Shown: positions 6,945 through 59,256 of the stretch, piece after piece
Layout: each line of letters begins with the position of its first letter
Position numbering within the stretch: the first letter of the stretch is position 1
Assembly: GCA_002269645.1 (NCBI GenBank)
Contig: NIVC01000347.1
Coordinates: 1-64,000 of the forward strand
Source of the DNA: Macrostomum lignano
Lineage: Eukaryota
Direction of reading: 5' to 3'
Length of the DNA stretch: 64,000 bases
The notes under the pieces: generated by a model
What the model was told of the DNA's origin: nothing
The model's database searches: none
What the model saw: the letters and a program-made list of their open reading frames with translations, nothing else
Made by a program: the position numbers and the translations under genes

Positions 6945-9900
6945 TCAACGCGCGTTAGGGAAGGCTCGACGAAAGCGCGCTTTGTACTCGAATGCCACCT
7001 GTTTGAAGGCGCAGACCACCGGATCGTCGGATCAGCGGCCAGCTGAGTCAGCAAATTCGCCACGGCCCTGCAGGCCAGTGAGAAGTCTTTGAGCAAGTCG
7101 AATAAGTCGCCCTCCCGAATTCCATTATCGCGAACAATCGAAGCCCGACTGCAGTGAGTGAAAAAGTCCAAAGCGTAAGCGTTTAACAGTCGCTTCGTAG
7201 GCAGCAGCGGAATCAAATTGGCATCGGTGACGATCTCCAATGGCAGCAGGCGACGCAACTGTTCCGAGCTGTTATTACCGCTGTTCAATAGCACGCGACG
7301 AAGTGCTTCGTTAGAGTCAGGAGTGGTGGGACCCCAGGATAGCCGAGCCAGAGGAGCCACCGCTGACACTTGGAGCTGGCGATCGCTGCTAGGCACAATG
7401 GGAGCGGATTGGCTGAACGGCAGAGCGGTAGAGAATTTCAGCAGGCCAGAATCGGCAGTGCAGCGCAGGTAGTTGGTGTAAGTCACAGCTGTGGCCGAGT
7501 TGTAGTCACGGACTGCCGATTCAATATCGTTTGGCAGCGGCTTCAGAAGCACCTTGGAGTTCTCGGTTGGCCTAGAAATCAGTAGAGATGGTAGTGTACT
7601 CAGGCACGCACTCACACACACGCTCACATAGGGTGTACAGCGGCAAGCGGCCTTGGGGGGACTAGTCCTCATGGGTGTGAATCGCTCGTCAACCCCAAGG
7701 CTAATTTTCGAGAACAAGCCCTAAAATCAATGTTTGAGTATGGAAATGAGCCAGAGGTCGTAGCGCGGGGCGAGAGTAGGTGAAATAGATGTTTAAGATA
7801 AAGTTCCTAACAGTATCATTACTTTTTTGTCAGTGGTTTGCCAATCAGAACCTATGATTTTAGCGCAAAACTGCAGGATTTTTACCGGACATAATGCAGA
7901 GTTCCATCAGCCGTCCTTTTAACCAGATACCGGGGCAAGTCCACCTTAGTGAACAGGTGGCAGAGGATTCGAACCAATTTTCTCAACGTTTTGTCGGAGA
8001 ATTGCACTCGCAACGGCGGCAATTGAAGCTCAAAATCGTTGGCCGTGTGCTGCTGCCGGCCCCGGTTGTGGTTAGGGCGGCCGGAGTAGCAGCTGGCGCA
8101 CAGGCTGTAGTCAGACCAGCACTTGGTGCACTTGAATCTCTGACCAACTATCGGTTCATCAGTCTGACAGCCGACGCAATATAATTCGTAGTGAATTGGC
8201 GGCAGCTGATTGCTGGCTGGCTCGCACAGCTGGCGCAGAGCGGGAGTTCGTAGCAGATAGGTGAGCACGAAGTTGCCAGGCTGCAGGTAGCCCATGTGGC
8301 ACACTAGGCCGGCCAGGTCCTGGAGAATGGCCGAATGGTATACCCGTTTAAAATGTTGCCGTGACAAGAATCGCTAGTCATTGCAAACAACTCTTTAGTG
8401 ACTCTAGCGACTTGTGATTTTTTAAAGACTCAAACGACTGTAATGCTACGGAGAGGCGACTGCTGAGTTACGAAAGTCATCCAAGAGTCGTGATAGCGCT
8501 TAACTTTCTATTTAAGTAGACTAAACAGAACTGTAAATTCTAAATGCGATTCTAATTGATACATGCAAATTGACGCAGATTCCTTTTGACGGAACTCAGT
8601 GGTTCTAAAGTGACTCTAGCGCACAAACCTTAAGAATTGCAATAATTGCATATATTATTCATACTTCAAATAAAACGGTATGCAACTTGAAAAAAAGCTG
8701 GGTGGCCATTCGTACAACACTAGTAACACTATGAAACTCACCAGCGGAGCGCCCAACTCATTAATAAGATCCTGCCTGTACAGAAACTCCGCACTAAACA
8801 GAAAGAATAATCGTAATTGCTGCATCATATCCGGCCTCTGATGCGCAGCAAACGGATGCTCCAAAACCGTAGCCGCTTGATTGTGGGCCACCTCGGGATC
8901 TGTGGCATTCCCAGTCAGAAGCAACAGTCTGAGAACGAAAGCGCAGGTAAGCGGAAAGCCGCCCTTCAGTTCTGGCAGGTCGGCTTGGATCAGGTGAGCA
9001 ATCTTGGAGGCGGGCACGCCGTAGAACACAATGTTACCGATGTTGTCGAAGCCGCGTCGACCAGACCGACCGGCCATCTGGTGATAGTTGAGCGCATCCA
9101 AAAACTTGTCGTCGCTAGCGAATACGACAGTTTTACAGGGCATGTGAACGCCCAGAGCCAGGGTGGCGGTTGCTGTGACCACCTGCACGGGGCGGTGAGA
9201 CTCTTAAGTGAATCACTGGCTGCACGAAATAAAAGATGACACCAAGATTATTTTTGATTGGCCGACCGAATCGGGTAAAGAAACTTTCAGCGATCTGCTC
9301 TATTGAGTTTTAAAAAAGATCAAAAAGTTATTCCGTAAAAACCTCAAAGCTGAAATTCCTGTTGTCTTTCGCACCGAAAAGATCGCTAAGTTTAGATCAA
9401 ATCAGAAATCCAGTGTGCCCCGACCTCTCGCTGCAGGTTTTGTTTACAAATTTAATTGCTCTGATGACCAGAGCATTTCCTATATAGGAAAGACCAAACG
9501 ACACATGTACACGAGGATTAGAGAACATTGACTAAAAAACTCTGTCATTAATGAACATTTGCTCACCTGCAAGAGCTGCTGTGACACTGAACCACACGAA
9601 ATGATTGACTATAGAATTTTGTAAGAACGATAACAAACTTAGCTTATTAGACGCTATGCACATTAAGGCCTAATAACCTACTCTGAACAATCAGCTTGCC
9701 ATGTGGGGTGTTAGCCGTCAACTTTAACTTTTTTAGCTCGCTCAATAACCGGACAGGACAGCTGTTTTGATATGTTCCACGCCTTTCACCCAAACTTGTG
9801 TACCCAGTTTTGTACTTCATTTTTACTCCTCTGTCAAATATTACAATTGTTCAAGTGTTCAAGACACTCTCTCCATGTCAGACCAGCCATGACAAGGTTT

Positions 9901-12900
9901 ATCAGCTTGACGAAAGTCGCCGGGGCATTTCTTAGACCGAAACTCACAAATCGCAAGTTGATATTTTGGATCTAGCGGGCACTGGTGATAGCCTGAAGCC
10001 AAGTCTAGAGTTGAAAAAATAGCATTTCCTGCAAGCGCCTCTAAAGTTTCATCCATTCGCGGCGGTGGAAATGGGTCAAGACTGTTTACTTTATTTAGTC
10101 GGCGATAATCCAGGCACAGCATGATGGATCCGTCCTTCTTCCGTACAGGCATGACTGAGCTGACCCACGAGGATTGACACTCCTACCGAAATCTATTAGC
10201 CTGTCGATTTCTTCATCGATTTCTGGCCTAATGTGCGGCGGGATGCGGCGTGGTGGTTCTCTAGTTGGCCTGGCGTCCCCGGGGTCTATGGTATGCATTG
10301 CCTGGTCAGTTGAACCCAGCTCGCTATAGTCCTTGGCAAAGACGTCTCTGTTCTGACGGTTCAACTTTATGAACGACACCTGCTGGTCCTCGGACAAGTC
10401 CGGCGAGTCACAACTGCCCAGATGCTCTACAGGATCCCAGTCTGTCGAGAGAGAACTGCTTAACTTGTGCCTTGGGTTCTTCATCAAGATTTGGTTGGCT
10501 GTCATGGATGGGCGAGAACCAGCTAATCTGCTTTCCTTTTGTCAGGACTACAGGTTCTACCGACACATTGGTGATCTTGAGAGGGACGGAACCGTCAGCA
10601 GAGGGCACAACTGACCTAGCTAGCATCACGTGGCCTTCAGTCTGGGAGTGGGTCTCTGCTATTCCTAAAAACCGAAATTCCTTCACTCCTCTCCGACTCA
10701 GCTTAGCTCGAATGATTTGAGACCGATTTGCAGGAACTGGTTCCGATTTTGAAATGACTATCCGGCAGAGAAGGGGTCACTCAGAAGACATACAAAAAGA
10801 AAAAGTTCCTTTCGAAGTGACGATCTGATAGTTAGCAAAATCTAACGTGGCTGATTGGGATCGGAAAAAATCTGCATTAAGGATGCAACGGTGCAGTATG
10901 TGTGAGACGACGACGAAGGTGTTGACGAAATCTATGCGAGCCAATGGAAAATTCCCCAACGCACTCCCCCAGCACATCTTTGACATCGCCATTTGCAACT
11001 TGAATACTCTTTCCTATGTAGCTTGGCTTCAACCGGCTCGGTTCGAGTTCCTCTTCCACGCGGCTTCACTTAGCAGGGAGATACTTCAGCCGGAATCTAG
11101 CAAGCATGCAATACTACTTGTTCTGCTTTCAAATATCACATCGACAAAACAAGTTCTGTACCTTGTGCGGGTTGGCTCGGTGCGCTGGGTTGGGCCTCTA
11201 CTGCTAATTCGGGTGGGTGCCTGGATGGCCCTGCCTCCAGGTCACCTGACCGTTTCCCGTCTGCTGCTGGTCTCTTTGCAGTTTGAAACACCTGGCCTGT
11301 TTGTGACCGGGCCGGTTGCAGTAATTGCAAACTATAGAGTTTCTGCATTGCTGGGTCGTGTGGGTGATCTCGAAACATGCAACGACCACACTGGACAGTT
11401 CTCTGAGCTGGTGCTGCAGCCAGCTCAGAGTCACGGCACGGCACGAGTGTTGTGATATAGGCCAGATCGCAACTCTAGTTATCTCAACGGACGAGCCCAG
11501 AGATGGCGTCAGTCAACTGGCCGGACTGACTTCGGACTCTGAGCGTGGGATCGCGCCAGGAGACTTGATCAGCTTGTCCCTACCGCACAAATTAAACCAA
11601 ACCAGTCCTTCGAATGAGAAAGACACGCGAGTCACTCTCTTTATCTTCACACGCAACAGCGATGGCGGCGGTAGGGGTGGCTTCTCTCAACTTCTGGCGA
11701 AAGTTCTGAGTAAAGACTGGCTTCTGAGTAAGTTCGGTTTTGGTTGTAATAGAGCTTGTAGCTGCGTCTAGATCGACACGAAAGGATGGCCTCCCCTACC
11801 GCCGCTCCTGCATACATTTATATTTACGCTAGCTGGTTAAGCCCTGGGGTATCGTATCGCTACCCTGGGGTATCGTATCGCTACCCTGGGGTATCGTATC
11901 GCTACCCTGGGGTATCGTATCGCTACCCTGGGGTATCGTATCGCTACCCTGGGGTATCGTATCGCTACCCTGGGGTATCGTATCGCTACCCCAGGCCCAG
12001 CTAGCCAAAATTACGAGTCTTAAAAGTTACAAAGCCCGCCGGGGTCGCGATTGGAAGGGGAGAGTACACAAACCGATTGGCTGGGCCGCCAGCCAATCGC
12101 AGGGCGAGCGAGGGGGCGCACTGGGGCGCAGCCAGCTAAAATCTGTTGGCTTATACAGACAGTGGGGTCGGTGCAACTGGGAGGGGGGTTTGACGCAGAC
12201 AGAATGGGGGTGTTGACGCCGACACGCGGCTGGGAGGGTTAGGAGTGCATTGCCGGGCACACTTGATCGAGAGTCAGAGATTGTCATGCTTCTTTTTTGG
12301 TCGATCCAACGCTTCGTAAGTTTTTATGCGTTTTATGTCTACTAATTAAAACTAAAAATTCAAGTGGAATGATATTTTGTCAACACGGCCACGTAAAAAC
12401 AGCTTAGTTTTTTTACACCGCATCGATTGAGTAATCAAATCAAAAGGCTAAATGTGCAGATCGAAGCAAAAATTATTATTCTAATTCTGGGCTCCCGAAT
12501 TATTTTTGATTTGATTTACGTCTAGATTTTTTAGTTAAGCTACCTCTATATGTTGACACTATAAAGCTAAACTTACATACATGTACAGTGCTAGCTTGCA
12601 CTCAGAGCCATGGATCAATCAAGCTGAAAAAATAAGCAAACAGCCTAAACTAACCTGCAAATGACCGTTGCGGAACAGCATCTCAACAGCTTGTCGGTGC
12701 TTTGCAGAACAACCGGCATGGTGATAGCAAACGCCAAATTCTATCATATTCGTCACATTCTCATTTAACGGCTTCAGTACTTCCTTAAGAAAAGATTCTT
12801 GTACGGCCTGCGGTTTAAAATAGGCGCAGGCCTGAATTTTGCTGCGCAGTTCTAGCCGATGTCTGTAGTAGGATTCCCGTTCGGCGGCATCGACCGGATT

Positions 12901-15900
12901 TTCATCGTCCGAATCATCTTTGTCACGATTGCGCTTGTGGGCGATGGCCATCGCTTTGCGAGCTTTCTCCATGCGCTCTAGCAGATTCGGATCGACAGCT
13001 TGCTTAATCCTTTCATTAGCTCGATCAACAAGCGACGCAGCAAGCTTTTCAATGCCTTTACGATCGTTCATAAAAACCAAAGCTGGTAAGCGACCCTGGG
13101 AATGAAGCCGATCAATTAGATCGGGAAATGCGCTAATAATATCAACGTCGGATAGAAACTCAAATTGTTGAGTTACATTCTGCTGGTCATCATTCAGCTG
13201 AATTGTAGTAAGTAGCTGGGTAGACTTTGCCTGCGAACTCTGACGAAGCAGCTCAGAGACAGTCCTTTTTAGGTCGACTTCCAATTCCCGAAATTGCGTC
13301 CTGTTTTAAAATCAAAGCGATTTAGCAGATGAGAAATATTTTAAAATTGACAACGCCCTAAATTCTAGGTCAAAATAACGTTAAATTTATCATTAAATGG
13401 AGTAGAAATGGCGAATTCTTACAAGTACGACATAAGGTCATTGAATTATCAGAAGCACTTAAACATTGTCTTATACTCCAGTAATACAAAAGTCTGCTTT
13501 TGATATGTTTGTGTTAAGTCCGACATAGTCTAATAGGCCCTCACAGGCGGTCGCGAAGGCGCACACCGCCCACTATACGCCCCACTTAGTTGTCCTACTG
13601 GGTGGTAGACTCAAGGCAAAAACGTTCTTGCTCATGAATTATTACCTAGTAATAGGCTTGTTGCCAAAAAACGATTCCGGTTTAAATTTCTGAAGAGCTT
13701 TAACAGCAGCTGGATCGTCGGCGAAGCATTTCAAAGCGGCTGACCACACCTCCGTAGATTCCTTCGGTGACAGCTTCAAATTCCGAGGAAATCCGTTAAT
13801 TCGCAATAGTTTGTCGCTCAGAAAAGCGCACGGATTAACTTCAGCTACACAGCCACTCTTGGGCAGATAAACAGAAGTGCGGATGTCTGAATAGCGCTCA
13901 GAGTAGGTCACCAGATTCACTTTGTAACCTTCTACAGCAACAAGAGCGACACCTTTCTGTCGCTGCTGTTTCTTATGCTTAGGCTGCATCGGCTGCGATT
14001 GCTTCAGAAGAGTCGAGTCTTGAACCTGAACAAACTGCTTTATGGTCTGCAGCCAGTCGTGAAAATAGTCTTTGTTAGAGATAGTCGCCGATAGGGCAAG
14101 AAACGGACACCGGATTAGGCAGAGCAAGTATTCCCAGACAATACCCCCAATCCCGGTGCCGATGCAGTGAACTTCGTCGAAGATCACATAGCGAATGCGG
14201 CTAGCCCAGCCTTGACGCCTGGGACTCAGCAGTAGCAGTTCAAGGCACTGCGGCACTGTCACCAAAATCTGACAGCTAGTTGCTTTGTGATTATAGTCTC
14301 GAGTAAATACTCCGCATAGCTCCATGCCGGGAGTCAGATTTGGCTTAGAAAACTTGGCACTAATGGAAGCCTGAACCTGATTCACTAAAGCTTTGGTTGG
14401 CGCTACATAAACAGCGACAGCCTCGTCGCTCATCTCCAGAACCTTTTTCATGCAGTAGTAAGAGCAGAACGTTTTACCGGACGATGTTGGAGCAACAATA
14501 ACGGCCGACTCGCGCCTGTCAACCACGTCTAGCAGTTCTCTTTGCCAGGTGTCGGGAATGAATCCCTTCACCCTGGGATCGGGATCGAATCGAACATTTC
14601 TCTGCATCAGATGGCCCATGTGCTGCATTTGAAAGTCACGATAGTTTAATGGACAGATGCATTCTTTTTCAACTTGCACATTCTTCAAGCGCTCCGCGTC
14701 TACACTAGAAACAGCGGCAGCCTCTTTGAATCCAACCATGATAAATAATTCGGCAATCTTGACGCGCAATTCAGAACTAATTATGCTATCCAACGGCTCA
14801 GTTGTGTACTTGTGCAGGGTTTGCACTAGATCTGCCAAGGCGCTGAATGACCTACCGCTGCATCCACTACTAGCACAGCTGGTCTTCCACAATGTGTACT
14901 GCTCTCGCATTACGAAAAGTACCGGCTCTTCGAAAATTCGATCCTGCACTGTGCAGGACTCGGCCATACGTGTGGCCTTAGCGATAGCCTGAGTCGGTTC
15001 CAATTTTTTAACGCTAAGCAACAGATTTTTCCACTGCTCCTTTAGCTTCTTCATATCTTTGTCGGCTTTGGCGCGCAAATTCTCTTCCTTGATGACGTCA
15101 GCTTTAGAAACAGGCTTCGACTTGCCTTTCGGTTGCTTCTGCTTCTGTTGGTTAGGCTTCTCGCCACCACTAGCCGATGCAGCGGACGCACCGCCAGAAC
15201 TGGTTGACAGTACGATAGTTTCGCTAGTCTCACCATGCAGCGATTTGCCGTACATGCTAATGTGATTCTGTAACTGTTGAATTTTCTTTAACTGTATCTT
15301 TCTAAGAATAGGATTGGAAGACAGCTCAGGCTCGTCTTGCTCTTCTAAATCGTCGCGAAGCTCCCGATTAACGTGCCAATGCCAGCGCTCGTCGAATAGC
15401 ATCGCTGAGTTCTGTCCAGCCTCGTTAGTTAATGATATGCAACCAGATGAACCGAGTTTGTCAAGAATTTCGCCGGCAAATTCTTTTAACAGACGATTGT
15501 CGATACGCTGAAGCGGTGCTGTTTCAACCGCCTGTTCATTGATGGGCTCCTGTGAGAGCGCCTGCTTAGAAATTGACAGCGGCAATAAAGGCAAGGCGTT
15601 CAAATGATGGGCACTGTTCAGTTTTTGCAGCTCGATAGAGATCTTAGAGGCGTAGCTTTCGTATCTAAAGAGGCGAAAAACGAATCAATTTTTTTGAATG
15701 AACTTGACGTAAACAAGATACAGTTAGAAAACTAATGATATTCACGTCAGATACTTTATTAATGGTGCTGTTGTTTTTTTAGCCATGACTATTATATGGC
15801 TTTTGCTTTTGTCATGCTCAGCCTATGGATCTCAGCCACCATTTGTTAGCTGGCTTTTCGAGACACTTTTCTGTGTTGGGTCATAGAAAGCTTGAAGAGT

Positions 15901-18254
15901 CATGCTAAAGGAAAACTTAATGGAAAAAGTAGCATCATGAATGAAATAATAACATGGATTGTTCGTCTGCCGAGCGTCTAGGAGGACTAGGACTATGGTC
16001 AAAGTTCTGGAATTTACCCCCGTACTAAAGCTATTGGCTGATGAAGTCTATTCAGTCTCTACTTACGACTTACAAGTTTGACTTCCTTTGGCACTTGCTT
16101 AGGGAATTCCTAGATGCCGTAATTTTGTCAAAAGGGAAATCCGAGAGTTCAAACGTTCATGGTTTTTTATCTTCAGCAGCCAGTCTACTTCATAGGGAGG
16201 GGCTACTTACAGACTTCATCAGCCAATAGCATTTGTATGGGACCAAATCCTAGAATGCTGACCATAGACGCATGGCAGATGAGCAATCCTTGTTATTCCT
16301 TCATCTATGAGTAGCATAGTCAAAGAAGGAATATGGATTCTTGGGCCATCCCATTACCATTGTCCCATCAATATGAACACATTTCAGTTTTTCATGGAAT
16401 TCCATTTGTGGAAATTTGAACCCTTTGCACGGACCCAACTGTATGTGATGGATTGAACCTTGTTTTTGTACTTTTATTGCAATATTTGTTATTGGACTTA
16501 AAACTCAAAGCAGCTTCAAGAAAAATGGCTATGCTTACATACACCTATGTAAGCATAGATAGTCTTGAAGAAAGAAAAATAAAGCTGAGGTCTTTAGTGG
16601 CGCTTCATTACCTGCATTTCTTGATTAATTGACTTTGAAAAAAACTTTCCTAATAAAATAAATAAGTTATTGAATGGACTGGCTGGTTTAAAGCCTCTGG
16701 AAAAGATAAACTATTATAGAACCGGTTAATTTATACTTACACCTAATCATATTTTTGTATGATACTGTATCAAAAAGTTTTGGAAAAAAATAATTGCAGT
16801 TGGCGCACAAGCGCACAAGCTGAGGTTGGAATAGGACATGTAGTGATAAGAAAGCAAAATGGATACTTTTTGCAAACTAGCTGAAAAATATCCTAAAATT
16901 TTACATGATGCAGTAGAAGACTGAATCCTAAACGTACCTAGCCAAAATAGATCTTGCTCGCGGGTGCCAGCCAGGCAGTTGGTTAATCATGACCTGACCA
17001 AATTGGCGATAGACGCAAACATCGATGAGATCAGCGATAGACTCTGGATCGGCGAATTCGCTAAGATCTTTCATTGGCAAGAGCTCAATCAGTAGGAATT
17101 CTGCCAACTCATTTAAGGAAGAGAGCCAATTCTGTGTCTTTATCTTGTCGTCTGTAGCAGCGGCTTCGTCGGCGCTTTTAGTAGCAGAAACAAGCTGGAG
17201 CCGGTCGTTTAACGTCATAGTTGACATGCAGGCAAAAAAGAGGCACCAACGGCTCACTTTTTCAATAACTTCGTCGTTGCTTTTGATGTTAGCACACTTA
17301 ACTAGAAGTCGGAGAGCAACTTTAACAGCGAGGTGGTCCTTCAAGCGGCTGCCTGGTTCTGAACAAAAAGAGAATAAAAAAGTTATTAGCTACCAGCTAA
17401 AATTAACAAACTTAAGCAATTAATCAACAAATAGAAATTTAAAACGTACGAATTGACTTAAAAGTGCCGTCAGCAACAGCTTCAGTGTTTAAATCTTCGA
17501 CACTTTTTTTAGCTGTGCCCTTGGATTCGAAAGATTTGTCAATATCAATAGCTTCATCATCAGTTTCATCGACCTTTGACAATTGAACATCTTTATGTGA
17601 TTGCTTCTTAAATAATCTGTCATCCAATGACATCCATTGTACACAAGAGGCATGTAGTTTCATGTCATTCTGGCGCAGGCTGCTAATATAAGCAACTGGC
17701 ACCCTGCAAGCCAGGCTAGACAAAGCCAAAAGCCTTTGTTTGGTGGATTTGCCATAGCCAACACCGTCGTGAAGCATAAAGAAGAGAGGCTTCTCTTCCT
17801 TCAAATAGTTAAGCCAGGCTGGGTCGAAGCAAGACTTGGCCAATTCGGTGTGCACAGGCACTGAACAGTTGATGTCAAGGTGCAACTGCATAGCGCGCCT
17901 AAACAGATCCATCAGTGGATCATTAAAAAAACTATTAAAATAAACAACTTGACAGTCACCGCCGTGATCTTTGAGTAGTTTCAGAATCGATTCGGCTAAA
18001 TAAAACAAATGCAACTGCTGACCATATTGCCACCCAACAGTGGCCGCAGCCTCCATCAGTAAAGATTCACCATCAAGCACATAGAATTCGCCATCAACTC
18101 GATCTTGGAAAAGTGGCATCAGTTTGGCAGAGAGTGCAAAACTAGCCAATTTTGACTTGCACATTGACCCAGGCTTCTTCTTTGGTTCAAACTGGCATTC
18201 TGTTTGCAGCCTTAGCTGCTCTAAATCTTTGCCTAGATTTTTGCCTTGTTTGTC
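6945..18254 (-). CDS. DDX60: DDX60-like Ski2/DExH RNA helicase, 7 exons, ~1800 aa, with inserted ZZ zinc finger
   Basis: Exons (minus) 18254-17450, 17358-16938, 15664-13646, 13300-12655, 9182-8742, 8319-7886 and 7571-6945, all with phase-compatible GT-AG sites. Motifs: N-terminal EFYVLDGESLL...QQLHLFYLAE; PDTWQRELLDVVD..ESAVIVAPTSSGKT (motif I); DEVH (II); LALSATI (III); GVCYHHAG; ATATLALGVHMPCK; QMAGRSGRRGFD (VI); C-terminal LNAYALDF.H....DN...EGD...LLKDF. These match DDX60 as I recall it. Confidence 0.93.
9262..9720 (+). mobile_element. Penelope-like element remnant (GIY-YIG endonuclease) in DDX60 intron 4
   Basis: Broken translation KIKKLFRKNLKAEIPVVFRTEKI...GFVYKFNCSDDQSISYIGKTKRHMYTRIREH*...NSVINEHL...LLDAMHIK...PTLNNQ, the PLE GIY-YIG signature, with stops. 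Confidence 0.8.
9860..11450 (-). mobile_element. Decayed Ty3/Gypsy gag-pol fragment in DDX60 intron 4
   Basis: CCHC knuckle CNYCNRPGHKQARC (~11270-11330). Protease-region VANG...LG fragment. RT motifs PPRRIPPHIRPEIDEEI, VRKKDGSIMLCLDYRRLN, FSTLDLASGYHQ and NAPATF..L, spread over several frames. Confidence 0.9.
11451..12290 (-). mobile_element. LTR-like segment
   Basis: Ends ...TATCACA on the minus strand at 11451. Minus-strand TATAAAT at 11817-11823 and CCAAT/ATTGG boxes at ~12076-12096. Outer boundary and partner LTR not identified. Confidence 0.45.
11842..11988. repeat. 7 x 21-bp perfect tandem repeat CCCTGGGGTATCGTATCGCTA
   Basis: Direct reading. Flanked by imperfect inverted repeats GCTAGCTGG...CCTGGGG (11828-11849) and CCCCAGGCCCAGCTAGC (11989-12005). 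Confidence 0.97.
15941..16304. mobile_element. Foldback/MITE-like palindromic element in DDX60 intron 2
   Basis: Nested inverted repeats: GCTATTGGCTGATGAAGTCT (~16030-16049) vs AGACTTCATCAGCCAATAGC (16211-16230), with outer arms at 15941-15985 and 16262-16304. Confidence 0.6.
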
Positions 18255-19904: not shown

Positions 19905-20628
19905 ATGGCAGGCGCATATCCATGTGTGGTCTGTCTGCAGCCAGTTTGCGATGGACAAGAAGCAATTGAGTGTTCTCAATGCTTGAATTGGCAGCACCAT
20001 GCATGTGATAGTCGCGTCACAGTCGATCAGTATTCTGCAATGAGAAATGTCGGTGAGTTTTTCTGGCTTTGCAATCAATGCAATAGACGGGCTCCTGCAG
20101 GTAACATAGCAGTGTCTCAAGCTGCAGATGCTGCAGTGGTACATGTACAAGCCCCGAATTCTGGACCAGCGGCTGTTCCTCTGCCTGCTGAAAATCCAGA
20201 ACCAGTGCATTTGATTCCGGCACAAGCAGAAAATTTTCTACACCAGTATCCAGATTTCAATGACCCTGATCCAGCTCTGGAAGAATCCATTCAAATTTCT
20301 CCAGCAGAGCTTGCACCGCCCCGCAGCCCACCTCCCCAGCCCTTTGAGATTCTTACAGGTGCAGGATGCAGTCATGGAAAAGACCTTCTAGTGCAGTATG
20401 CCCAACGAGACCTTGGCCATCTGATGGATGCAAAAACGCGGCGAAATGGCAATACGTACTATTGCTGCACTAAGCGTTTATCACTGCACTGTCATGGCTC
20501 CGCAGTCCGCCGTGCTGATGGAACCATAGAAGCCCTTGCTCCGCACATGTGCAATCCAGTTGATTGGCCAGCTCAGAAAAGAAAAGTAGCAAAGGAGGTA
20601 AAGGAGGGAGCAAAGCGCATGTTGTTTC
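19905..20628 (+). pseudogene. PHD finger + FLYWCH-like protein (Mutator/MULE-transposase-like N-terminus), interrupted by an LTR retrotransposon
   Basis: C4HC3 pattern CVVC...C..GQEAIECSQCLNWQHHAC...WLCNQC; FLYWCH-like GKDLLV...NGNTYYCCTKR..LHCHGS...H.C. The last ~28 codons of ORF 19905..20714 are LTR sequence. Confidence 0.7.
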
Positions 20629-39305: not shown

Positions 39306-39334
<29 letters not shown>

Positions 39335-41423: not shown

Positions 41424-44128
<2,705 letters not shown>

Positions 44129-48700: not shown

Positions 48701-51700
48701 TGAACCCTCCTCTCCAACAGGTGACCGTGAGCAGGCTCATGACCACAATGGCTGAGGATGATCGCTACCGTGAGTTGCGACAGAGCATCACAGACTTGTT
48801 CCGGGTGACTCGCAGCGACAGCCTTCGGCGCTACCTGCAGCCGGGGAGCTTCGTAACAGCCCAGACGCTGACGAGAGACCTGCACTGCAGCCTGCTGCTG
48901 TCCAACTTTGACCTGTTCAACTCGGACACGTTCCAGCCTCGCCGACATCTGGTTGAGGGCTACATCGAAAAAATGGGGGATGCTGACCGGGGCAACGTCA
49001 TCAGGGGTTACTCTGGTCTGCTGCAGCTCGCGGGGCTGACCCAGCTGGACCAGTATAGGACTACAGTGAGTCTGCAACCCTCCCAGATCGGCAGCTATCC
49101 ACAAATGCACAGTGACACACCAGACACAAAAAAGCATAGAGTGACACACCAGACACAAAAAGCATAGAGTGACACACCAGACACAAAAAGCATAGAGTGA
49201 CACACCAGATAAAAATAAGCATAGAGTGACACACCAGACACAAATAGCATAGAGTGACACAACAGACACAAATAAGCATAGAGTGACACACCAGACACAA
49301 AAAAGCATAGAGTGACACACCAGATACAAAAAGCATAGAGTGACACACCAGACACAAAAAGCATAGAGTGACACACCAGACACAAATAAGCATAGAGTGA
49401 CACACCAGACACAAAAAGCATATAGTGACACACCAGACACAAAAAGCATAGAGTGACACACCAGAGAGTGACACACCAGACACAAAAAGCATAGAGTGAC
49501 ACACCAGATACAAATAAGCATAGAGTGACACACCAGAAACAAATAGGCATAGAGTGACACACCAGACACAAAAAAGCACAAAGTGACACACCAGACACAA
49601 ATGCAATGAGACACACCAGACACATGCATAGAGACACACCAGACACAAATGCATAGAGACACTAGACACATGCATAGAGTGACACACCAGACACATTGCA
49701 TAGAGACACACCAGACACATGCATAGAGACACACCAGACACATGCATAGAGACACATCAGACACATGCATAGACACACCAGACACATGCATAGACACACC
49801 AGACACAAATGCATAGAGACACACCAGACACAAATCCAATGAGACACACCAGGCACAAATGCATAGAGACACACCAGACACATGCATAGAGACGCACCAG
49901 ACACATGCATAGACACACCAGACACATGCATAGACACACCAGACACAAATCCAATGAGACACACCAGGCACAAATGCATAGAGACACACCAGACACATGC
50001 ATAGAGACGCACCAGACACATGCATAGACACACCAGACACAAATGCATAGAGACACACCAGACACATGCATAGAGACACACCAGACACATGCATAGAGAC
50101 ACACCAGACACATGCATAGAGACACACCAGACACATGCATAGACACACCAGACACAAATGCATAGAGACACACCAGACACAAATGCATAGAGACACACCA
50201 GACACAAATGCATAGAGACACACCAGACACATGCATAGACACACCAGAAACAAATGCATAGAGACACACCAGACACAAATGCAATGAGACACACCAGACA
50301 CAAATGCAATGAGACACACCAGACACAAATGCATAGAGACACATCAGACACATGCATAGAGACACACCAGACACATGCATAGAGACACACCAGACACATG
50401 CATAGAGACACACCAGACACATGCATAGAGACACACCAGACACAAATGCATAGAGACACACCAGACACATGCATAGACACACCAGACACAAATGCATAGA
50501 GACACCAGACACATGCATAGAGACACACCAGACACATGCATAGAGACACACCAGACACAAATGCATAGAGACACACCAGACACATGCATAGACACACCAG
50601 ACACAAATTCACTCTGTCCCCCACCTCTGCTCCACCCGCAGTCGGAGATTCTCCGCACCGCCCTGGATCGAGTCAGGGACCGCAGAATTGAGGAGGTCCT
50701 GCGCTCGATTCTGGAGCCTCGCGACGGCTTCCAGCTGCTTCGCCTTGGCCAGCTCATCGCATTCTGCTTGGGCCAGCCGGCCCTGACAGTGGAGCCCAGC
50801 CCGCCCGGCTTCATCCGCAGCTTCCTCCGCGGCCTCATCCAGCAGTGCAACCCGGCCAATAATGCCCGAATGACTGGCGTCGGTCCCAGCTCTGTTGCTA
50901 TGCAATTCGTGCTCAGACTGCGCTCCTCTGTGCTGGTTGTTGACGAATACCCGGGCGGTCAGCCGAGCACCAACTTGAGCCGCCTCATCTGCATGTTTCA
51001 GCAGGACCGCGCCGAGGCCGTCAACCTGGCCGATTACCAGGTGTACGTGGCACCCTACTGCGCTGACGAGTGCACCAGGGCTCAGCATTTTGGCAGCGAC
51101 GAGAATCTAATGACACTGTTTGCCAATGAGCAGCTCAATAATGTGAGCTGATCTGACATTTATTGACACCTGACAGTCATTTGACGCATCTGACACCCAC
51201 CTGACACCTACCTAAACTCACCTGACACTTACCTAAACTCACCTGACACCTACCTAAACTCACCTGACACCTACCTAAACTCACCTGACACCTACCTAAA
51301 CTCACCTGACGCCTACCTAAACTCACCTGACACCTACCTAAACTCACCTGACACCTACCTAAACTCACCTGACACCTACCTAAACTCACCTGACACCTAC
51401 CTAAACTCACCTGACACCTACCTAAACTCACCTGACACCTACCTAAACTCACCTGACACCTACCTAAACTCACCTGACACCTACCTAAACTCACCTGACA
51501 CCTACCTAAACTCACCTGACGCCTACCTAAACTCACCTGACTCCTACCTAAACTCACCTGAAACCTACTGAAACTCACCTGACTCCTACCTAAACTCACC
51601 TGAAACCTACTAAAACTCACCTGACTCCTACCTAAACTCACCTGAAACCTACTGAAACTCACCTGACACCTACCTGAACTCACCTGACACCTACATAACC

Positions 51701-52112
51701 TCACCTGACGCCTACCTAAACTCACCTGACACCTACATAACCTCACCTGACGCCCACTGAAATCCCACAGCCCTCAGTCCGAGCCGTGGTATTTTTCATT
51801 GGCGCAGACATGGCTGCCAAATTGGACCAGTCAAGCAGTCTGGAGAGCCGCATGCTGAAGGCCTGTTTCGGTCAGCCACGCTGCGAAGTGCTCATGCTCA
51901 TGGACGAAGGCGTGGACCTGTCCGAAAAGGCCCAGTCGCGAGTGAACTGGCAACAAGCCAACCGGTTCGTGCTGTCTGTTCCTGACGATGAAATTGAATG
52001 GCGCAACTTCCTGGTACGACTGGCCAACCTGCCTGGGCCGCCGCTGCCTCCGCAAACGCCAATGTTTGACCAGCCGGAGTCTGTCAACAGCGTCTCCGTT
52101 GTTGCAGTGTAG
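45759..52112 (+). CDS. 489-aa protein, putative death-fold (CARD-like) N-terminus + TIR/SEFIR-like C-terminus, 4 exons
   Basis: Exons 45759-46040, 48721-49065, 50642-51142 and 51771-52112 with canonical GT-AG sites, all phase 0, giving an open frame. The gene model is strong. Domain identity is inferred only from secondary-structure-like patterning. Confidence 0.75.
46340..48495 (-). mobile_element. Internally deleted Mag-type Ty3/Gypsy LTR retrotransposon (2156 bp)
   Basis: Full 5' LTR 48173-48495 (TG..CA); truncated 3' LTR 46340-46499; 5-bp TSD AATAG (46335-46339 / 48496-48500). Single gag-pro-RT frame from ATG 48160 with one TGA at 47996-47998, two Cys/His knuckles, MQVDTGA protease, and RT ending at LDLSECYLQFPLDE. 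Confidence 0.95.
48158..48171 (-). other. Primer binding site, tRNA-Ser(GCU)-like
   Basis: TGGCGACGAGGATG is complementary to the tRNA-Ser 3' end CATCCTCGTCGCCA. The gag ATG lies inside it. Confidence 0.8.
49107..50610 (+). repeat. ~22-29-bp minisatellite (GACACACCAGACACA[A/T]..GCATAGA) filling intron 2
   Basis: Two sub-arrays: ..AAAAAGCATAGAGTGACAC.. and then ..ATGCATAGAGACAC... Source of the CVWCVS/CLVCL ORFs. Confidence 0.97.
51180..51755 (+). repeat. 21-bp minisatellite CACCTGACACCTACCTAAACT filling intron 3
   Basis: ~27 units; the shadow ORF repeats SLGRCQV. Confidence 0.97.
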
Positions 52113-54625
52113 AATTTCTACTACTCAACTGGAATTTTTTCTCAACCATTAATTTGAAAATCGAATTATTTGAGTTTCTCATGTATCAAACAAGTGTCAA
52201 TCAGTTGTTTGATAATCCTTTTGATGATTCAATACTCATTTGAAAGCGCCAAAGGTTTTTAGAACACATTATAAAACCGCTCTGTGTGTTTTCGGTTTGT
52301 TTTGTTGTTATTCCAGACTATAATTGTAGCTTTTTTAAAGAGAATTTTCATTCTCTAAAACCGTTTCCATTGTAAATGAAAAAAACCATCGTCAGCTCTA
52401 TTAATTACATTGTTGTTTTCTGTGTTTAAAATTTTAAGCTATTAGCGACACACTGGTTAAAAAGACAGTTTAAAGCTTGGAGTTGTGCACTTCTATTTTG
52501 ACACGTTTGATTGTCCTGTTTTGATATTGATATTTTGCTAAGCGTTATTTAAATATCAGTTTCTTCCCGTGTTGTTTGTCTATTCCAGGTTTTTTTATTA
52601 ATTATCATTCGCGTTTCTCTGCAGCTTTTATTGTTGTCCTTTTTTTTAACGGGCTAGCTTCCGTGTTAATATAAACATTGTAAAGTAACATGACTTAATA
52701 AGTACGAAATAAGTACGAAGGGTACTTTGTTTACTGTGAGCGACGGGAATGTCCGAAGCCATGCCAAGAATGATTTGACATCCTGAGTAAATGGCATTAC
52801 TGCCCATTCCGCCGACTCCCCTGAGCAGGCACACAAGCGCACGGATACGTACGCAGTTATACGCACATGACCTAACTTTATCTGTCATTTTCAAGGCATG
52901 TACACTTCACTGTGCCTTGTGGGGTTGGCTCTCAACACCGTTAATTGCACGAGCAGAGCCAAGCCGAGATTCCAATTTAGCCCCTAATTAATGGAATCGA
53001 GCCTGGAGTTTAAAAGTATTATCAAGTTTTTACTACTTAAAATGTCAAATTGTTTTGTAGTTTTACCATTTAGCTGAGCAAATGTGCAAGGAATTTTGGC
53101 TGAAATTTCAGCTTATTTGGACTTTCCTGTCGTTCACAGTAAACGCAGGTCAGAATACCTGCAAACTCACCCTCTCGTTTGCTATATACACCCTTACTTT
53201 AATGAACTTCATTAATTTCAAGCGTAGCTCTTTGAGTTTTTTTATTTTTTATAATTGTTCTTTGTAGTGCATTAGGTACTTCGGGTGTGTCATAAGTAAT
53301 GTCGCTGATGTGAAAACAGACGAACTTGCAATCGCAGATAAACAAAACTGTACCACTCAACAATATAGAGTCCCCCAATATCAATCACCCTCTGGCAGTG
53401 CTCATATAGCTTGTCCACCTCAGCCTGCAGGTGTTTTTAATCCAACAGCCATAACCAGTGCAACGCGGCCTGTTTAACCTCTTCATGATTTGCGAAACTC
53501 CTCTTGGAAAAGTCAGCCTTTAGTCATTGGAACAGAAATCTGTCGCACAAGTTGAGGTCCGGGCTATAGGGACTCTGTCAGAGCAGATTCACTCGCCGTG
53601 CAGGTAGAAAATCCGAAACAGGCTTACAGGTGTGCGACCGTGCGGTGTCCACCTGCCACAGAACCTCGTCCAGGAGACATGGAATTTGACCGAAGAGTGC
53701 GCCAAAGGACCCCAGTGTGCCGGGAAAAAGCGGATAAAAACTACTGACAATCGAACTTGACGTTTAACCCTCGATGAGACATCTTTGTTTGGCGTAAAGG
53801 CCACCAGCAGCATGGTCTTCTTGTCCGAGACGGACCTCGTGGTCACGGTCGGCAGCAGACCCCAGCTCCCAACCAGCAGCGATTGTCTGCCTTGCTGCCC
53901 TTGCCATCCAGGTGGAGCCAGCTTTCATCCTCAGCAACCAGGCAGTTTAGGATGTCATTCAAGCCCCGGCTGCTAAACACCTTGCGGATCTGCTTGGTGC
54001 AGGCGTCTTGTCGAGATTCATGGTTATTTTTGTTCGCTGCATAGACGATTTTTCATCGCGTTGCACTTGCTAAATCTGCTTGGCGTATTCTTGCGATAGC
54101 TTGGGCCATAAACAACCTATGCACGTCTCAAATGCACTGCTATTGCTTCACTAAGTATACTTTGCAGCTACACTACCCACAAATCCATGTGCCTACATAT
54201 TTTAGACAGAGGCCTGCAGTGACATTACTTATGACACACCCGAAGTATAAAGTAAGTTTTTTAGGGAAATTGTGAAAGTAACGTCAATACGAGCGTAGTA
54301 TGAGCGATTAAGGAATTAACGAAATCTTATGTATGTTTGTTTAAAAAACTACGAGCACTTAAAAATAAACAACGATTATGTTCTTGAAAGCAAGGAAACA
54401 ATTCTGCTTCGATCTATGCTTAAACTGCTTCTACAGAAGAAGAAAATTACAGCGCTGTGGAAATCTCCGAAAAACCAAGGATAGCATTGCATTGTATTTG
54501 TCGTCAGCTTTTATACTAAAAATTTTCTCTGACAGGTAGGCTTTGGATAGTGCCAATGATTCTTCTAGAAACACAATGTAATTGTTCAGATTCGAGTGGT
54601 TTGTGGCAATAAAATCCGTAAAGTC

Positions 54626-55095
54626 GTGCTGAAGGAGGCGAAGGAGGTCCTCGATCGGTCGCTGGCAGTTCGACAATTAGAGGATCGGGTCGAGGAACAT
54701 GCAAGGGACCATGGATGTTCAGGGATGAATCATGCATAGCAGATTTCAAGGACTCATTCGTCCATGATTCTGGGTCTAGGGCTCATATTCTCACGCGTTT
54801 GGCTAATTGAAGAAGCAGCTTGGACGTTGCGACTATATATTAAGCAGTTTATCGAGCTGGGTTTGGATAGAGTGGAAGGCATTCAAGCTCGAGTCGCTGA
54901 TGAAGCTACTTACGGAAAACAAGCAGAGATGCTGCATCGCTTGAAATTATGTAAAGTTCTTGTTCTGAATTCTTTCTAGTGAGGACAGCTGGTTTGACCA
55001 CTTCCCTGGTGAACAGCGAGAAACACTTGACTGTCGTGGTTCCATGCAGTGAAGGAGGTCGATCAGCAGCTGTGCTGTGATTGGTCGGGAGGCAG
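54626..55095 (+). pseudogene. Decayed inverted paralogous fragment of the IFIT-like gene 3' region
   Basis: GTGCTGAAGGAGGCGAAGGAGGTCCTCGATCGGTCGCTGGCAGTTCG, GAAGGCATTCAAGCTCGAGTCGCTGATGAAGCT and GTGAGGACAGCTGG match the minus strand of 57245-56790, with indels. Confidence 0.9.
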
Positions 55096-55759
55096 ACGTG
55101 TAAACGCCCGAACTCTCACTTCCAGACCGCAAGTCTGCAAGGGAACAATTTATTTCTCATTTACTGTTGCTGCAGGCTCCTCTTATAGTAGTTCCAGTGC
55201 GCGTAGTTCTCTTCTTCGAATCTGGAATTACATGTAGCCGTACACGAGTGCAGATTTTCTTTGCGAAAATTATTCAGTCTAACACAGTGATGCGCCCTAA
55301 TAATCAATTTACTATCGGCAATCAGGTCCACCAGAAAGTTCCCGTCTTCTTTCAGCTAATCATGATTTATCTCTTGTGTCATACATAGCAACATCATCAT
55401 GCTTTTATAAATTTACTGGGTGTGTACTCTACTTATAGTAGGGATTTATGAATGGTCTAACTCTACAGGCCGGAGTCGGAGCTGATGAGGCCACTCCGAG
55501 TTGCCAGGTAAAGTGGCACTCAAAGTCTTTCAATATCAAAATTCGGGAACATTATGTGATGTTTAACGCTCGTATTGTGCATGACAGAAGTAGGTTTTCT
55601 GGAACGTTAATCCCAGCGATCATCGAACTAGGTTATAACCATTTTTACACTGCCTTTTATCGATGGAGATGGATTAAAACTGTTTCAGTGCTTGTTTCCA
55701 CCAAGTATTGCAAGAAAATCGCCTGCTGAATTTTTTAAATGTATCAATAGTGATATTAT

Positions 55760-55945
55760 CCTTGGCTTTGGGTGGGGGAATTATCATATGGATAGGGGGG
55801 GGGCATTATCTTTGGGTAGGGGAATTATCATATGGGTAGGGGGGGCGTTATCTTTGGGTAGGTATATTATCCTTGAGTAAGGATATACACTATTCCTTTC
55901 AGGTAAGGTTATTACCCTTTTAGGGGTGTTATCTTTGGGTAGCAA
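55760..55945. repeat. Short degenerate tandem repeat (ATTATC...GGGTAGGGG)
   Basis: Repeated TTATCTTTGGGTAG / TTATCATATGG(A/G)TAGGGGGG units. Confidence 0.6.
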
Positions 55946-56627
55946 AAATATTATCCCTTTTTTGTTGCCTCTCCTATGGGGGCCGAAGGTTGCTAGTCTA
56001 ACTTCTCAAATTCTCCCTGCTTGTCAAGGCCCTCTTCTCTTAGCAAAGCAAGTAAGGTTTATACGACCTGGAAGTAAATTATCTTTGCCGTTTTGTAGAA
56101 TCTTCAAAATTGAAAGCAATAAGCGACGAACTTTATATTTTGTTCAAATAGCAATCAAGAGTGCGCTAAACAAGGTGTCGCTACCCAGGAAACATCGAAA
56201 TATTTAAAGTTTGTAAATTTACGGTTATGGACTGATGTAATATCAATAGATACACCGTACTTATGAGTAACCTGTTTTAAAACTCTTACATAAAACTCAT
56301 GACTACAAAAACGAGTATAAAAAAACTCTTGATTCGTTGCTGTGCGACTTAAACCTCTCAGCAAAGTTACAGGAGAAACGCTTGCAACCAGACAAAAATT
56401 TGAGTTATCTTGAGAATTGTGGATTGGCATATTGAGTTTGACTCAATAATAGTTTCGTATGCAAAAAATAGAATAAAAAACTTAAACTCTAAAAAATAAA
56501 GTAATCGAATTCAATCAACTTACATGCAATACCGAATCTACGAGTAGCTATAGCGATTAAAAAACACTTTCAGTAGAACGGAGAAAATATCACTCTTACT
56601 TGCGATGAGACGCATGTAAGCTTAATG

Positions 56628-59256
56628 TTAAGCCTCTCGTTGCAACTCAGACTTATTCTTCTGGTTCTGAGCACCAGAAGCAGATAAACTTGAGACGCCA
56701 ACTCCATCGGAGAAGACGGCCCACGTCTCCTCAGCGAACTCTGCTGCCAGATGCGCCACGTCGTAGGCCGCCCTTCGACACTCTCCGCCTCCCGACCAAT
56801 CAGATTTGAGCTGCTGATTGAGCCCCTTGACTGCAATCTCAGTCGAGTGCTTCTCGCTGTTTACTGGGTAGACCCAGCGGACAATCCAGCTGTCCTCACT
56901 TGACAGAATTCTGTGCTCACGACTCACCATGAAGTTAAAGACGTCTCTGGTGTCTCTCGATTGGTGAAAGTTGGGATCAATTCGCTTCAATTCTTCTAGC
57001 AGGCATTTTCGCACCTTTTCAAGCGATGCAGCATCTTTGTTTTCTTTGAGCAGCTTCATCAGCGACTCGAGCTCGAATGCCTTCCGCTCTGTCTCCGAAC
57101 TCAGCTGTTTGAACTGCTTTTTATAGTCATCTCCAAGCTGCTTCTTTAACTGGCCAAACGCGTGAGGGTATGAAAACTCTCGACCCGATCCCTTAAGCCG
57201 AACTGCCAGCGACCGATCGAGGACTTCCTTTGCCTCCTTCAGCACCGAGACGATCATGTTGTTCATTTCTTGAAGTCCTATGTCAGTCTCTTTTATCTGC
57301 AGCTTCGTCATGAGAAATCGATTCGATCTCATGAGGTTTCCGCGATCGCCAGCGCCTTCAGCTGACCGAGTCGAGCCCGCCTTGCTCGTTAGCAGATTGA
57401 GCTCCAAGAACTCAAGCAATTCTGAGCTTTACAGACTTCTTGAAATCGTCCGAATCCAATTCAGTTTCAATAAAGAAGCTGCTGGAATCGTCCAGAGTGA
57501 GTTCGATCTTGGCGCACAGGTCGTACAATTCTCGGCGGAAGAACAGCGGGTCTTTTCCAGCTTGAGATGATGTTGACGCATCCGCCATCACCCTTTCGGC
57601 AGTTTTCTGTTCGGACTTTCGACGCTCGAGAATGTCGAAAATTCGAGGAGCCGCATCGCGACATCCGCACTCGAGACACTCCATCAACTTCGTCAAATCT
57701 GAGGCGGGGTCTCTGAGTAGCGACTCAGCTATCAGTGCTTGCTTGTTCTCGTAATCACTGGACAATTTTCTAAAACTTGCAGCGGCCTTAGAAAATTCAC
57801 CATTCTTCATAAAATGGCGACCCAGATGCTCCAGAGCGAAATCGTTTTTGTCGTCTCGCCCCAGAGCCGTCCTGTAGAGGCCTTCGACGTCGAGCTGAAC
57901 TTTGAATGTCCCGATGTTTTCGGCGTACCAAGCCAGGTACTCTTCAAACCCTTCCTGATTCTGGTTCAGCAGTCGAAGAAAGTTTTCCTTCTGGTTGGGC
58001 CATATTTGGTCCAAGGTTTTCTCAGCGTCAAAGGCAGCAACGCACGATTCTACAGCCTCCTTTGTTTCTCCAATTTTCATTAGGTACATGGCCTTGTAAA
58101 ACTCGACTGTGGCGACATTTTTGTTGTAGACCCTAAAGGTTTCTCGCAGAGAGTCGTACGCGTCTACAGCTGTGTCTTTTCCCCATTGTTCTCGCTGAAG
58201 CTCTATAATTTTCAACTCAATCCAGATGTGACCCGGCTCACCTGCTTATTCCTGGCCCTCTTCAAGCAGCTGGACCGCCTCCTCTCTATGGCCGGAGCTT
58301 AGAGCTTCTTTGGAAAGCTCAAGGAAGAATCCAGGATCGTCAGATACGCTTGCCACTTCTTTAGCATCCTCAAACAGCCGATTTCTAATGGCCTTTAAAT
58401 TGTTTGAGTTTGACTTTCTTAAAAGATACCGAAACACTTTCAGGCAAATTATGTACACGACTTGTGACTGCTCTTTCTGCTCTTTATCCATTCCTAGTAG
58501 AAGATTTGCAGCCTTTTCGGCCAAGCCTTGGCACAGACTGGAATACCGGTAGTTGTGCAGAATGGCTTCAGCATAGTTCGCGTAGAATGTAGCCGTCGTG
58601 AGACCTTTCTTCTCACCGACGTCTTTTGCCCTTCTCCATAGGTCCAACTGAACTCTGTCAGCGTGTTTATTAGCCGTCTGCCTATCGCAACGAGCTCTTA
58701 AGTAGGCTTCGCCATAGAGCCAGTAGAAGTTGCACGCCTTGCTGTGGTCCAATAGGATCCTTGACGCCTCGGCGAAGGCACTGGCGCCAATGGCGTATTT
58801 CATTGGACCAAAGCAGTCGAAAGCGACTCCCTTCGCTGCAAACGCTCGAGCCTTGCTGTTTGGGTCGAGTTCGTTCAGTCTCTGCATGTCTGTTTCGAGT
58901 TCTTCAGGTCTTAGTGGCCTGCCTTTTCCTCTGCTCAGCTGCTTGAGGTGCAGCATGTCGGCCCTGATAACCAACTCGCTTGACACCATGCAGTCTTCCT
59001 GACTGTCTTGCTGTATTTGTGCATCAATTTCCAACGCTTCATCGAGATGTTTCTTGGCCAAGTCGAACTTTTTGACGCGTCTGCGAGTGTACAGGTATGC
59101 TATGGTTGCCAGGTATGCGGCCTTTTTGTGAGGCTCGCGCGTTATCTTTTTCTTCGTCTTTTCGATCACTTCATCGATGTTTGAGTTTGTGCAGTTATCA
59201 TCTGGTTTCCAGGTGAAATGGCACTCCAGCTGGTCTAGCGACTGCAGGCTAGTCAT
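56628..59256 (-). pseudogene. IFIT-like TPR protein with extra C-terminal domain (~875 codons, intronless); one in-frame TAA and one frameshift
   Basis: N-terminus SLDQLECHFTW...LATIAYL...ELVIRAD...AKGVAFDCFGPMKYAIGASAFAEA parallels IFIT SLEQLRCHFTW...NLLAYV...LVTWGN...[23 protein letters not shown] (recalled). ORFs 58246..59256 and 57412..58215 are in one frame separated only by TAA 58246-58248. ORF 56628..57419 continues after a +1 shift near 57420-57435. Confidence 0.82.

Follow-up and report, generated by a model that had tools for sequence, protein, structure and literature searches.

In vertebrates, DDX60 and DDX60L are interferon-stimulated helicases of the Ski2-like type, and IFIT proteins fold into three tetratricopeptide repeat (TPR) subdomains that form an RNA-binding channel. 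The DDX60 family is old and not purely antiviral. IFITs have been described as a jawed-vertebrate innovation that appeared alongside interferon; the survey found none outside jawed vertebrates, warned that invertebrate TPR hits are not to be taken for IFITs, and reported that the gene structure and tandem clusters of vertebrate IFITs are conserved (PMC3688568). Our literature search returned nothing relevant on IFIT or DDX60 in flatworms or other invertebrates, nor on the Mlig gene identifiers of the locus analyzed here. This locus lies in a stretch of 64,000 nucleotides (nt), NIVC01000347.1:1-64000 (hereafter the window), of the flatworm Macrostomum lignano DV1, assembly GCA_002269645.1 (Mlig_3_7). 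The coordinates of the 336-amino acid (aa) open frame at 58246-59256 agreed with this assignment, and the locus fetched was identical base for base to window 48246-64000. The original prediction had read positions 6945-59256 as a candidate antiviral neighborhood, with functional linkage as an inference, composed of a DDX60-like helicase, a putative CARD/TIR-SEFIR-like adaptor, and an IFIT-like TPR protein. Our analysis revealed that all three host genes are real, and that they are probably unrelated to one another, having become neighbors by chance in a repeat-rich genome rather than forming a coordinated defense unit.

The DDX60-like gene (6938-18317), the middle gene (45759-52112), and the IFIT-like TPR gene (56628-59256) lie on the minus, plus, and minus strands, respectively, and therefore cannot be one transcription unit; M. 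lignano is known to make polycistronic precursors (PMC5730564). The DDX60-like and middle genes are arranged head to head, 27 kb apart, with a PHD-like open frame, a 9.9-kb long terminal repeat (LTR) element, and 15 kb of repeats in the gap between them, and the middle and TPR genes are arranged tail to tail (convergently), 4.5 kb apart. Retroelements and tandem or low-complexity repeats make up more than 40% of the 52-kb span 6945-59256. Across the genome, LTR retrotransposons account for 21% and simple and tandem repeats for 15%, and the assembly contains 180 Mb of non-repetitive blocks duplicated at ≥95% identity (PMC5730564). In later work, M. lignano has been termed neopolyploid (PMC10733133).

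A search for promoter motifs shared by the three genes, which had been suggested as a check on co-regulation, was negative: scans with vertebrate consensus motifs, which may not suit a flatworm, found seven matches to the interferon-stimulated response element (ISRE)-like pattern GAAANNGAAA in the window against five expected, one of them approximately 1.5 kb upstream of the DDX60-like gene and none in the middle or TPR promoters, and zero occurrences of the NF-kB consensus GGGRNWYYCC in the window. Conserved synteny, another suggested check, was likewise not supported. The older, intact paralogue loci L001 and L002, which encode the TPR proteins P0009 and P0010, showed no DDX60-like or middle-gene-like sequence within the 10 kb inspected on each side. 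The middle-TPR linkage recurred only in near-identical duplicates: the assembly holds three copies of the middle gene (in the window and at loci L004 and L005), and the TPR gene follows it in both other loci as in the window, in blocks 98.9% identical to the window. This repeated pairing is the known redundancy of the assembly and not conserved synteny; duplicates at 99% identity are uninformative as to whether selection maintains the linkage, and since the middle gene has no relatives, the three-gene linkage cannot be traced beyond Macrostomum. Given the alternating strands, the lack of a shared motif, and the unlinked paralogues, the proposed functional linkage of the three genes was not borne out.

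The helicase call was firm and confirmed what had been predicted. Seven open coding segments were recognized on the minus strand: segment 1 (18317-17442, PIN-like), segment 2 (17389-16931), segment 3 (15684-13645, DEAD/RecA1), segment 4 (13305-12622, start of RecA2), segment 5 (9203-8658, remainder of RecA2), segment 6 (8373-7885, ZZ finger), and segment 7 (7720-6938, C-terminus and stop). Pfam analysis identified the PIN-like_DDX60 domain (PF23002) on 17439-18272 (E 4.4e-30; score 105 bits, cut-off 27), DEAD (E 5.5e-22), and ZZ (E 9e-6), and the Helicase_C match was weak and under the Pfam cut-off. In a search of solved structures, the large exon matched kDDX60 (PDB 7ase) with E 9.3e-54, followed by Brr2, Mtr4, and Ski2 at approximately 1e-15, and the segment at 12622-13305 matched a Ski2-like RecA2 domain (E 7.9e-7); the C-terminal segment (6941-7720) showed no relative among solved structures. 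In-frame GT-AG joins are available at every junction, the exon ends being approximate because several such pairs fit at some of them, and the join 12655->9182, across a 3.4-kb intron, restores helicase motif V. With its domains in order and in-frame joins at each junction, the gene looks intact, and its sequence firmly places the predicted product as a full-length member of the Ski2-like DDX60 family that would act as an ATP-driven RNA helicase. One helicase intron carries a perfect 7-copy 21-nt tandem repeat (11842-11991).

For the middle gene, whose predicted position between the helicase and IFIT-like genes was correct, a four-exon splice model on the plus strand (45759-46040, 48721-49065, 50642-51142, and 51771-52112, stop included) yielded a protein of 489 aa, with all introns GT-AG and in phase 0. 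The model equals GenBank entry PAA85098.1 (BOX15_Mlig014298g1), barring three extra N-terminal residues in that partial record, and the GenBank annotation of the assembly is transcript-based (PMC5730564); the protein is also 99% identical to UniRef A0A1I8G9I5. Comparison with the L004 copy revealed 18 synonymous and 5 non-synonymous differences (ratio 0.08), and the gene is under purifying selection.

Homology searches with the middle gene did not lead outside the species. A word-indexed protein search returned a single cluster, from M. lignano, and an exhaustive HMMER search of 1.84 billion representative proteins with P0001, an old 565-aa model of the gene, detected no homologue of the middle gene beyond M. 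lignano; its matches covered only residues 488-559, a repeat-derived tail outside the gene. This tail corresponds to window 53883-54044 (+) and is shared with the ends of at least seven other predicted M. lignano proteins, at 95-96% identity for six of them and 85% for P0002, and probably represents a repeat that was mistaken for the last exon. The middle protein, its halves, and P0001 matched no Pfam, NCBIfam, or PADLOC family at E≤10, including TIR, CARD, Death, DED, and Pyrin, and a sequence search of solved structures with the middle protein gave one noise match and then nothing. AlphaFold prediction without an alignment reached a mean predicted local distance difference test (pLDDT) score of 37, with residues 380-446 alone at 53-63; the N-terminal 290 residues were predicted to be helical (pLDDT 30-40), and strands and helices alternated in the last ~180 residues of this low-confidence model. 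Foldseek returned nothing below E 0.07 for it, with no TIR and no death fold, and at a mean pLDDT of 37 such matches are meaningless. Two old UniProt models of the gene carry the automatic name 'TIR domain-containing protein', which probably rests on a PROSITE profile and whose TIR domain we could not reproduce. The putative CARD/TIR-SEFIR-like identity given to this gene by the original prediction is thus unsupported by searches of Pfam, NCBIfam, PADLOC, solved structures, and Foldseek. On the evidence of sequence comparison, the gene is a lineage-restricted orphan found in M. lignano only, and its product would be a transcribed, constrained protein with a helical N-terminal two thirds and, judging from the model, a probable alpha/beta C-terminal third.

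The IFIT-like TPR gene has a single-exon coding sequence (CDS) at 56628-59256 (−), which in the window falls into three open segments (58246-59256, 57412-58215, and 56628-57419). Its N-terminus, SLDQLECHFTW, was aligned by HMMER to the N-terminus of human IFIT1. A first homologue search with the 336-aa segment returned nothing at E 1e-3, and a single-sequence search of solved structures placed IFIT1 chains as the top four matches, weakly, at E 0.027. With a read-through query carrying X in place of the stop, only two relatives were found among the matches listed, both hypothetical M. lignano proteins: P0009 (921 aa, 59% identical to the query) and P0010 (1062 aa, 50% identical). No named IFIT relative appeared among the matches listed for the IFIT-like queries. 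LECHFTW was invariant across the three-way alignment of the window copy, P0009, and P0010, and a profile of these three members matched IFIT5 among solved structures at E 7.3e-5 (domain values 0.012 and 10). The match was collinear, from profile 7-182 to IFIT5 residues 13-182, with a second stretch further on, and IFIT5 was the only natural protein matched in the N-terminal region; the other matches were designed consensus TPR proteins, fusions bearing such designed domains, and LapB.

Structure prediction was consistent with a TPR solenoid. AlphaFold modeled residues ~160-530 of P0009 as all helical with pLDDT 72-95, and Foldseek ranked IFIT5 third to sixth for this model (E 1.4e-7), with IFIT1 lower; the IFIT5 alignment spanned 548 columns with a TM-score of 0.44 by target and a root-mean-square deviation (rmsd) of 10.8 Å. 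The intact family members, at 877, 921, and 1062 aa, are not TPR-only and exceed the ~450-500 aa expected of an IFIT; their last ~220 residues form a strongly conserved C-terminal domain with no relative in any library searched. The CDS is also a single exon at L004 18517-21150 and L001 10001-12766. The non-synonymous/synonymous ratio between the window copy and P0009 was 0.26 for 57412-58215 and 0.32 for 56628-57419, which points to past purifying selection on these second and third segments, and synonymous sites were saturated in the first (58246-59256). As far as our comparisons reach, the family is confined to Macrostomum and consists of a TPR part with an extra C-terminal domain. That it is homologous to IFITs is plausible but not proven. 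The predicted IFIT-like identity therefore stood in part: the N-terminal motif and the collinear IFIT5 profile match speak for it, but the protein is nearly twice the length of an IFIT, with an unrelated C-terminal domain, an intronless CDS, and a broken copy in the window. The product would be a solenoid of ~600 aa starting with an IFIT-type N-terminal module and followed by the ~220-aa C-terminal domain, and by analogy with IFITs its TPR part may serve as a ligand clamp, possibly for RNA ends.

Further members of the family lie nearby. The second, P0009, is on the same contig 80 kb away, and the 3' third of the window gene (56700-57682) shows 91% DNA identity to it (L001 11563-12550); the family is a mosaic, and its C-terminal domain has probably undergone gene conversion. 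In addition, tblastn (four collinear pieces, of which the best shows 59% identity over 54 aa) and blastn (81% over 166 nt) detected an inverted and degraded partial copy of the 3' part at 54626-55093 (+), 1.5 kb past the 3' end of the gene. Together with P0009, this fragment makes the window gene part of a loose IFIT-like cluster.

The intact counterpart of the window TPR gene is a single exon of 877 codons at L004 (NIVC01000900.1), 99.28% identical to the window copy. The two differ by 19 substitutions, one in-frame indel, one frameshifting indel, and one premature stop, at whose position both P0009 and P0010 encode an amino acid; GenBank annotates only the first 336 codons of the window gene. 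A 136-nt GT-AG intron between segments 2 and 3 was considered and rejected: the paralogues and the intact copy read straight through this stretch as coding, so the break is a frameshift, not an intron. The window product would accordingly be truncated by the premature stop, with a near-identical copy intact elsewhere.

The duplicate loci differ from the window in several further respects. At L004, the counterpart of window 13245-44500, including the PIN-like and DEAD helicase exons, is missing, and of helicase exon 4 only a part is seen, at the edge of the locus and at a distance of 9.4 kb from the middle gene. Alignment of L004 1-9800 with window 12619-45545 showed that ~31 kb (the first three helicase exons, the PHD-like frame, the LTR element, and repeats) has no counterpart; L004 instead carries 5 kb of unrelated sequence together with a mariner-like transposase frame (L004 7944-8435), and the difference is either a structural variant or a misassembly. 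Between window and L004, the middle gene shows 5% synonymous divergence and 87-89% identity in its introns (45759-51500). From approximately 51.5 kb onward, the block is 98.9% identical (51531-60348), with the downstream intergenic DNA differing by 0.27%. This step in divergence suggests that recombination or gene conversion has left a boundary within the middle gene.

Chance adjacency has to be weighed against the proposal of a conserved, co-regulated antiviral island in which a DDX60-like sensor or helicase, a death-fold/TIR adaptor, and an IFIT-like RNA-binding effector act together. Several observations count in favor of the island and against chance: three genes that recall vertebrate RNA-virus defense within 52 kb are suggestive, the assignment of the helicase to the DDX60 family is firm, the TPR protein does have an N-terminal module of IFIT type, UniProt gives the TIR name to two old models of the middle gene, the pairing of the middle and TPR genes (convergent, 4.5 kb apart) recurs at each of the three loci, a portion of the helicase gene is found close to the middle gene at L004 as well, and RIG-I-like receptors are present in M. 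lignano (species list in PMC8476169); the vertebrate motifs used in the scans and the 10-kb reach of the paralogue inspection weigh on the same side. We nevertheless consider the island very improbable, as its adaptor shows no TIR or death-fold signal in any of the five resources consulted and has no relatives, so that the linkage cannot be ancient, its strands alternate without a common motif, its TPR copy is broken in the window and its helicase truncated in L004, the older paralogues are unlinked, and the middle-TPR pair is retained only between duplicates at 99% identity. A narrower proposal, in which the TPR family is a true, very distant IFIT relative with a new C-terminal domain, paired with the TIR-named orphan for RNA defense in flatworms, appears unlikely. 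That the helicase and the TPR protein are Ski2-Ski3-like partners, their adjacency reflecting this partnership instead of IFIT-type RNA binding, would fit the Ski2-like character of DDX60 and the presence of SKI3/TTC37 chains among the top Foldseek matches of the TPR model. Those SKI3 alignments, however, had rmsd values of 20-34 Å and TM-scores of 0.11-0.25 (query- or target-normalized), which fits general TPR similarity; the paralogues are not beside helicase genes, and the family-profile search gave no sequence-level SKI3 match, leaving the partnership scarcely credible.

Independently of why the three genes are adjacent, the likeness to IFITs could be that of a generic long TPR protein, whose motif arose by convergence or matches by chance. 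Identity to IFITs is no more than 13-18% overall, the single-sequence IFIT1 match is at E 0.027, Foldseek ranks Ctr9, O-GlcNAc transferase, and SKI3 equal to IFIT5 and beside IFIT1, with TM-scores ≤0.44 and rmsd values of 10-13 Å, the proteins are 877-1062 aa long with an extra C-terminal domain, and the published survey found IFITs confined to jawed vertebrates (PMC3688568). Against this, the motif lies where it does in IFITs, at the N-terminus, and does not vary among three paralogues that are otherwise 50-59% identical, the IFIT5 profile match runs collinearly for ~170 residues from the motif and is the sole natural-protein match there, and, among the targets aligned along their full length, IFIT5 and IFIT1 have the smallest rmsd. 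We regard non-homology as a distinct possibility, on balance not the one we favor. The breaks in the window copy could also be assembly errors, with the gene intact in the window haplotype. A single substitution but five frameshifting indels separate the L005 copy (L005 18300-21300) from the intact copy, a pattern that looks like uncorrected long-read indel error and by which the window's frameshift may be an artefact too; the window copy has only one frameshifting indel, and the rest of its frame is open, with a non-synonymous/synonymous ratio of 0.22 against L004. The stop, however, is more likely to be real because it is a substitution, one base among 19, rather than an indel, on a 360-kb contig, and the transcript-based GenBank annotation calls only the 336-codon product, so that an intact window gene is doubtful. 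The L005 copy also cautions that uncorrected indel errors occur in the small contigs of this assembly.

The probable chance adjacency of three real genes carries a more general caution: in recently duplicated, repeat-rich genomes, immune-sounding genes can adjoin by chance, and synteny between contigs of one redundant assembly is no evidence of selection. The finding that merits attention is the TPR family of Macrostomum, with its IFIT-type N-terminus. If it were a true IFIT relative paired with the orphan, the origin of the IFIT module would move from jawed vertebrates back to early bilaterians. Should the homology hold, the questions would be where the IFIT module came from and what its job is without interferon, and M. 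lignano would offer a tractable, transgenic animal in which to study it.

The remainder of the span is dominated by retroelements, which are passengers outside the proposed trio, and by repeats. Element 1 (20629-30552, −) is a complete, young Ty3/gypsy-type LTR retrotransposon of 9924 bp, with LTRs at 20629-21686 and 29496-30552 (1058 bp, 99.8% identical, TG..CA ends, 4-bp target duplication), gag at 28223-29392, and pol at 22050-28391. Its gag contains a zinc knuckle and its pol contains reverse transcriptase, RNase H, and integrase; both frames are open with no breaks seen, and pol extends ~700 residues past the integrase without a recognized domain. LTR elements of M. lignano are reportedly transcribed upon heat induction, according to a 2025 paper. 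Element 2 (46340-48332, −), an LTR retroelement with an internal deletion, lies within intron 1 of the middle gene; it has 160-nt terminal direct repeats that are 99% identical and sits in a 31-nt tandem array (46084-46337 / 48496-48671). Its open frame (46430-47842) encodes a gag knuckle, a protease, and an initial portion of the reverse transcriptase, the rest of pol having been taken out by one large deletion. The element is absent from L004 (10317-11242) and L005, where the 31-nt array is uninterrupted, and is thus an insertion difference between near-identical duplicates. Element 3 (9860-11520, −) is an LTR-type remnant, recognized from pieces of frame, within the intron that interrupts RecA2 in the DDX60-like gene; what survives of its gag zinc knuckle, protease, and initial reverse-transcriptase portion is scattered over three frames, with no fewer than four frame changes, and RNase H and integrase are lacking. 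Its reverse-transcriptase region is 40-44% identical in aa sequence to those of elements 1 and 2, and the 32-44% identity among the three in this region assigns them to different families.

An open frame at 19905-20714 (+) has a weak PHD-type zinc finger (Pfam PHD 0.0034, below the cut-off) and a second cysteine/histidine-rich stretch, and its 3' end runs into the left LTR of element 1, which starts at 20629; this frame, too, is outside the proposed trio. Positions 30553-45700 consist of low-complexity purine/pyrimidine-rich and tandem-repeat DNA, as judged from composition skew, tandem repeats, and self-alignment, with no credible coding sequence; a tandem segmental duplication within it (35814-38411 and 41449-44008, 91-93% identical) yields meaningless serine/leucine-rich frames. 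Tandem Repeats Finder detected a 23-28-nt repeat filling intron 2 of the middle gene (49111-50605), and intron 3 is filled by 26 copies of a 21-nt tandem repeat (51198-51751); these intronic repeats give rise to many spurious long open frames on both strands. A G-rich 23-25-nt minisatellite lies near the window start (1830-2419). Toward the other end, a 1.76-kb segment (61071-62829) is 99.8% identical to L004 and L005 in the opposite orientation and lies beside an RNase H frame of a non-LTR-type element (62918-63625); the inverted segment is probably a mobile element or a small inversion.

The components of the locus can be compared with described systems. Element 1 follows the Ty3/gypsy plan of LTR-gag-pol(PR-RT-RNaseH-IN)-LTR, with TG..CA ends and a short target duplication, and departs from it in the ~700 pol residues beyond the integrase. 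With TIR adaptors of the MyD88 and SARM1 type and death-fold adaptors (CARD, DD), the middle protein shares only a UniProt name and an alternating strand-helix pattern, and it differs from them in having no model match at E≤10, no solved-structure or Foldseek match, and no homologue in other organisms. The TPR family resembles vertebrate IFITs in the L-x-x-L-E-C-H-F-T-W module at the same N-terminal position, in the collinear profile match over the first ~170 residues plus a second TPR stretch, and, in the predicted model, in an all-helical TPR solenoid that Foldseek aligned along the whole of IFIT5 and IFIT1. It differs in length (877-1062 aa against ~470-490 aa), in the conserved C-terminal domain of ~220 aa without known relatives, in a coding sequence without an intron, in the low identity (13-18%) and TM-score (<0.5), in positions after the motif that are not conserved with IFIT5 in the family-profile alignment, and in its host, a flatworm without interferon. 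Like DDX60/DDX60L and kDDX60 (PDB 7ase), the helicase combines an N-terminal PIN-like_DDX60 domain with a Ski2-type DEAD/RecA1 and RecA2 core in approximately 1,800 codons, and it is distinguished from them by a ZZ zinc finger near the C-terminus. Its nearest solved relative, the kinetoplastid kDDX60, is part of a translation initiation complex and not an antiviral factor, which makes a housekeeping role in RNA metabolism as likely for the M. lignano protein as an antiviral one.

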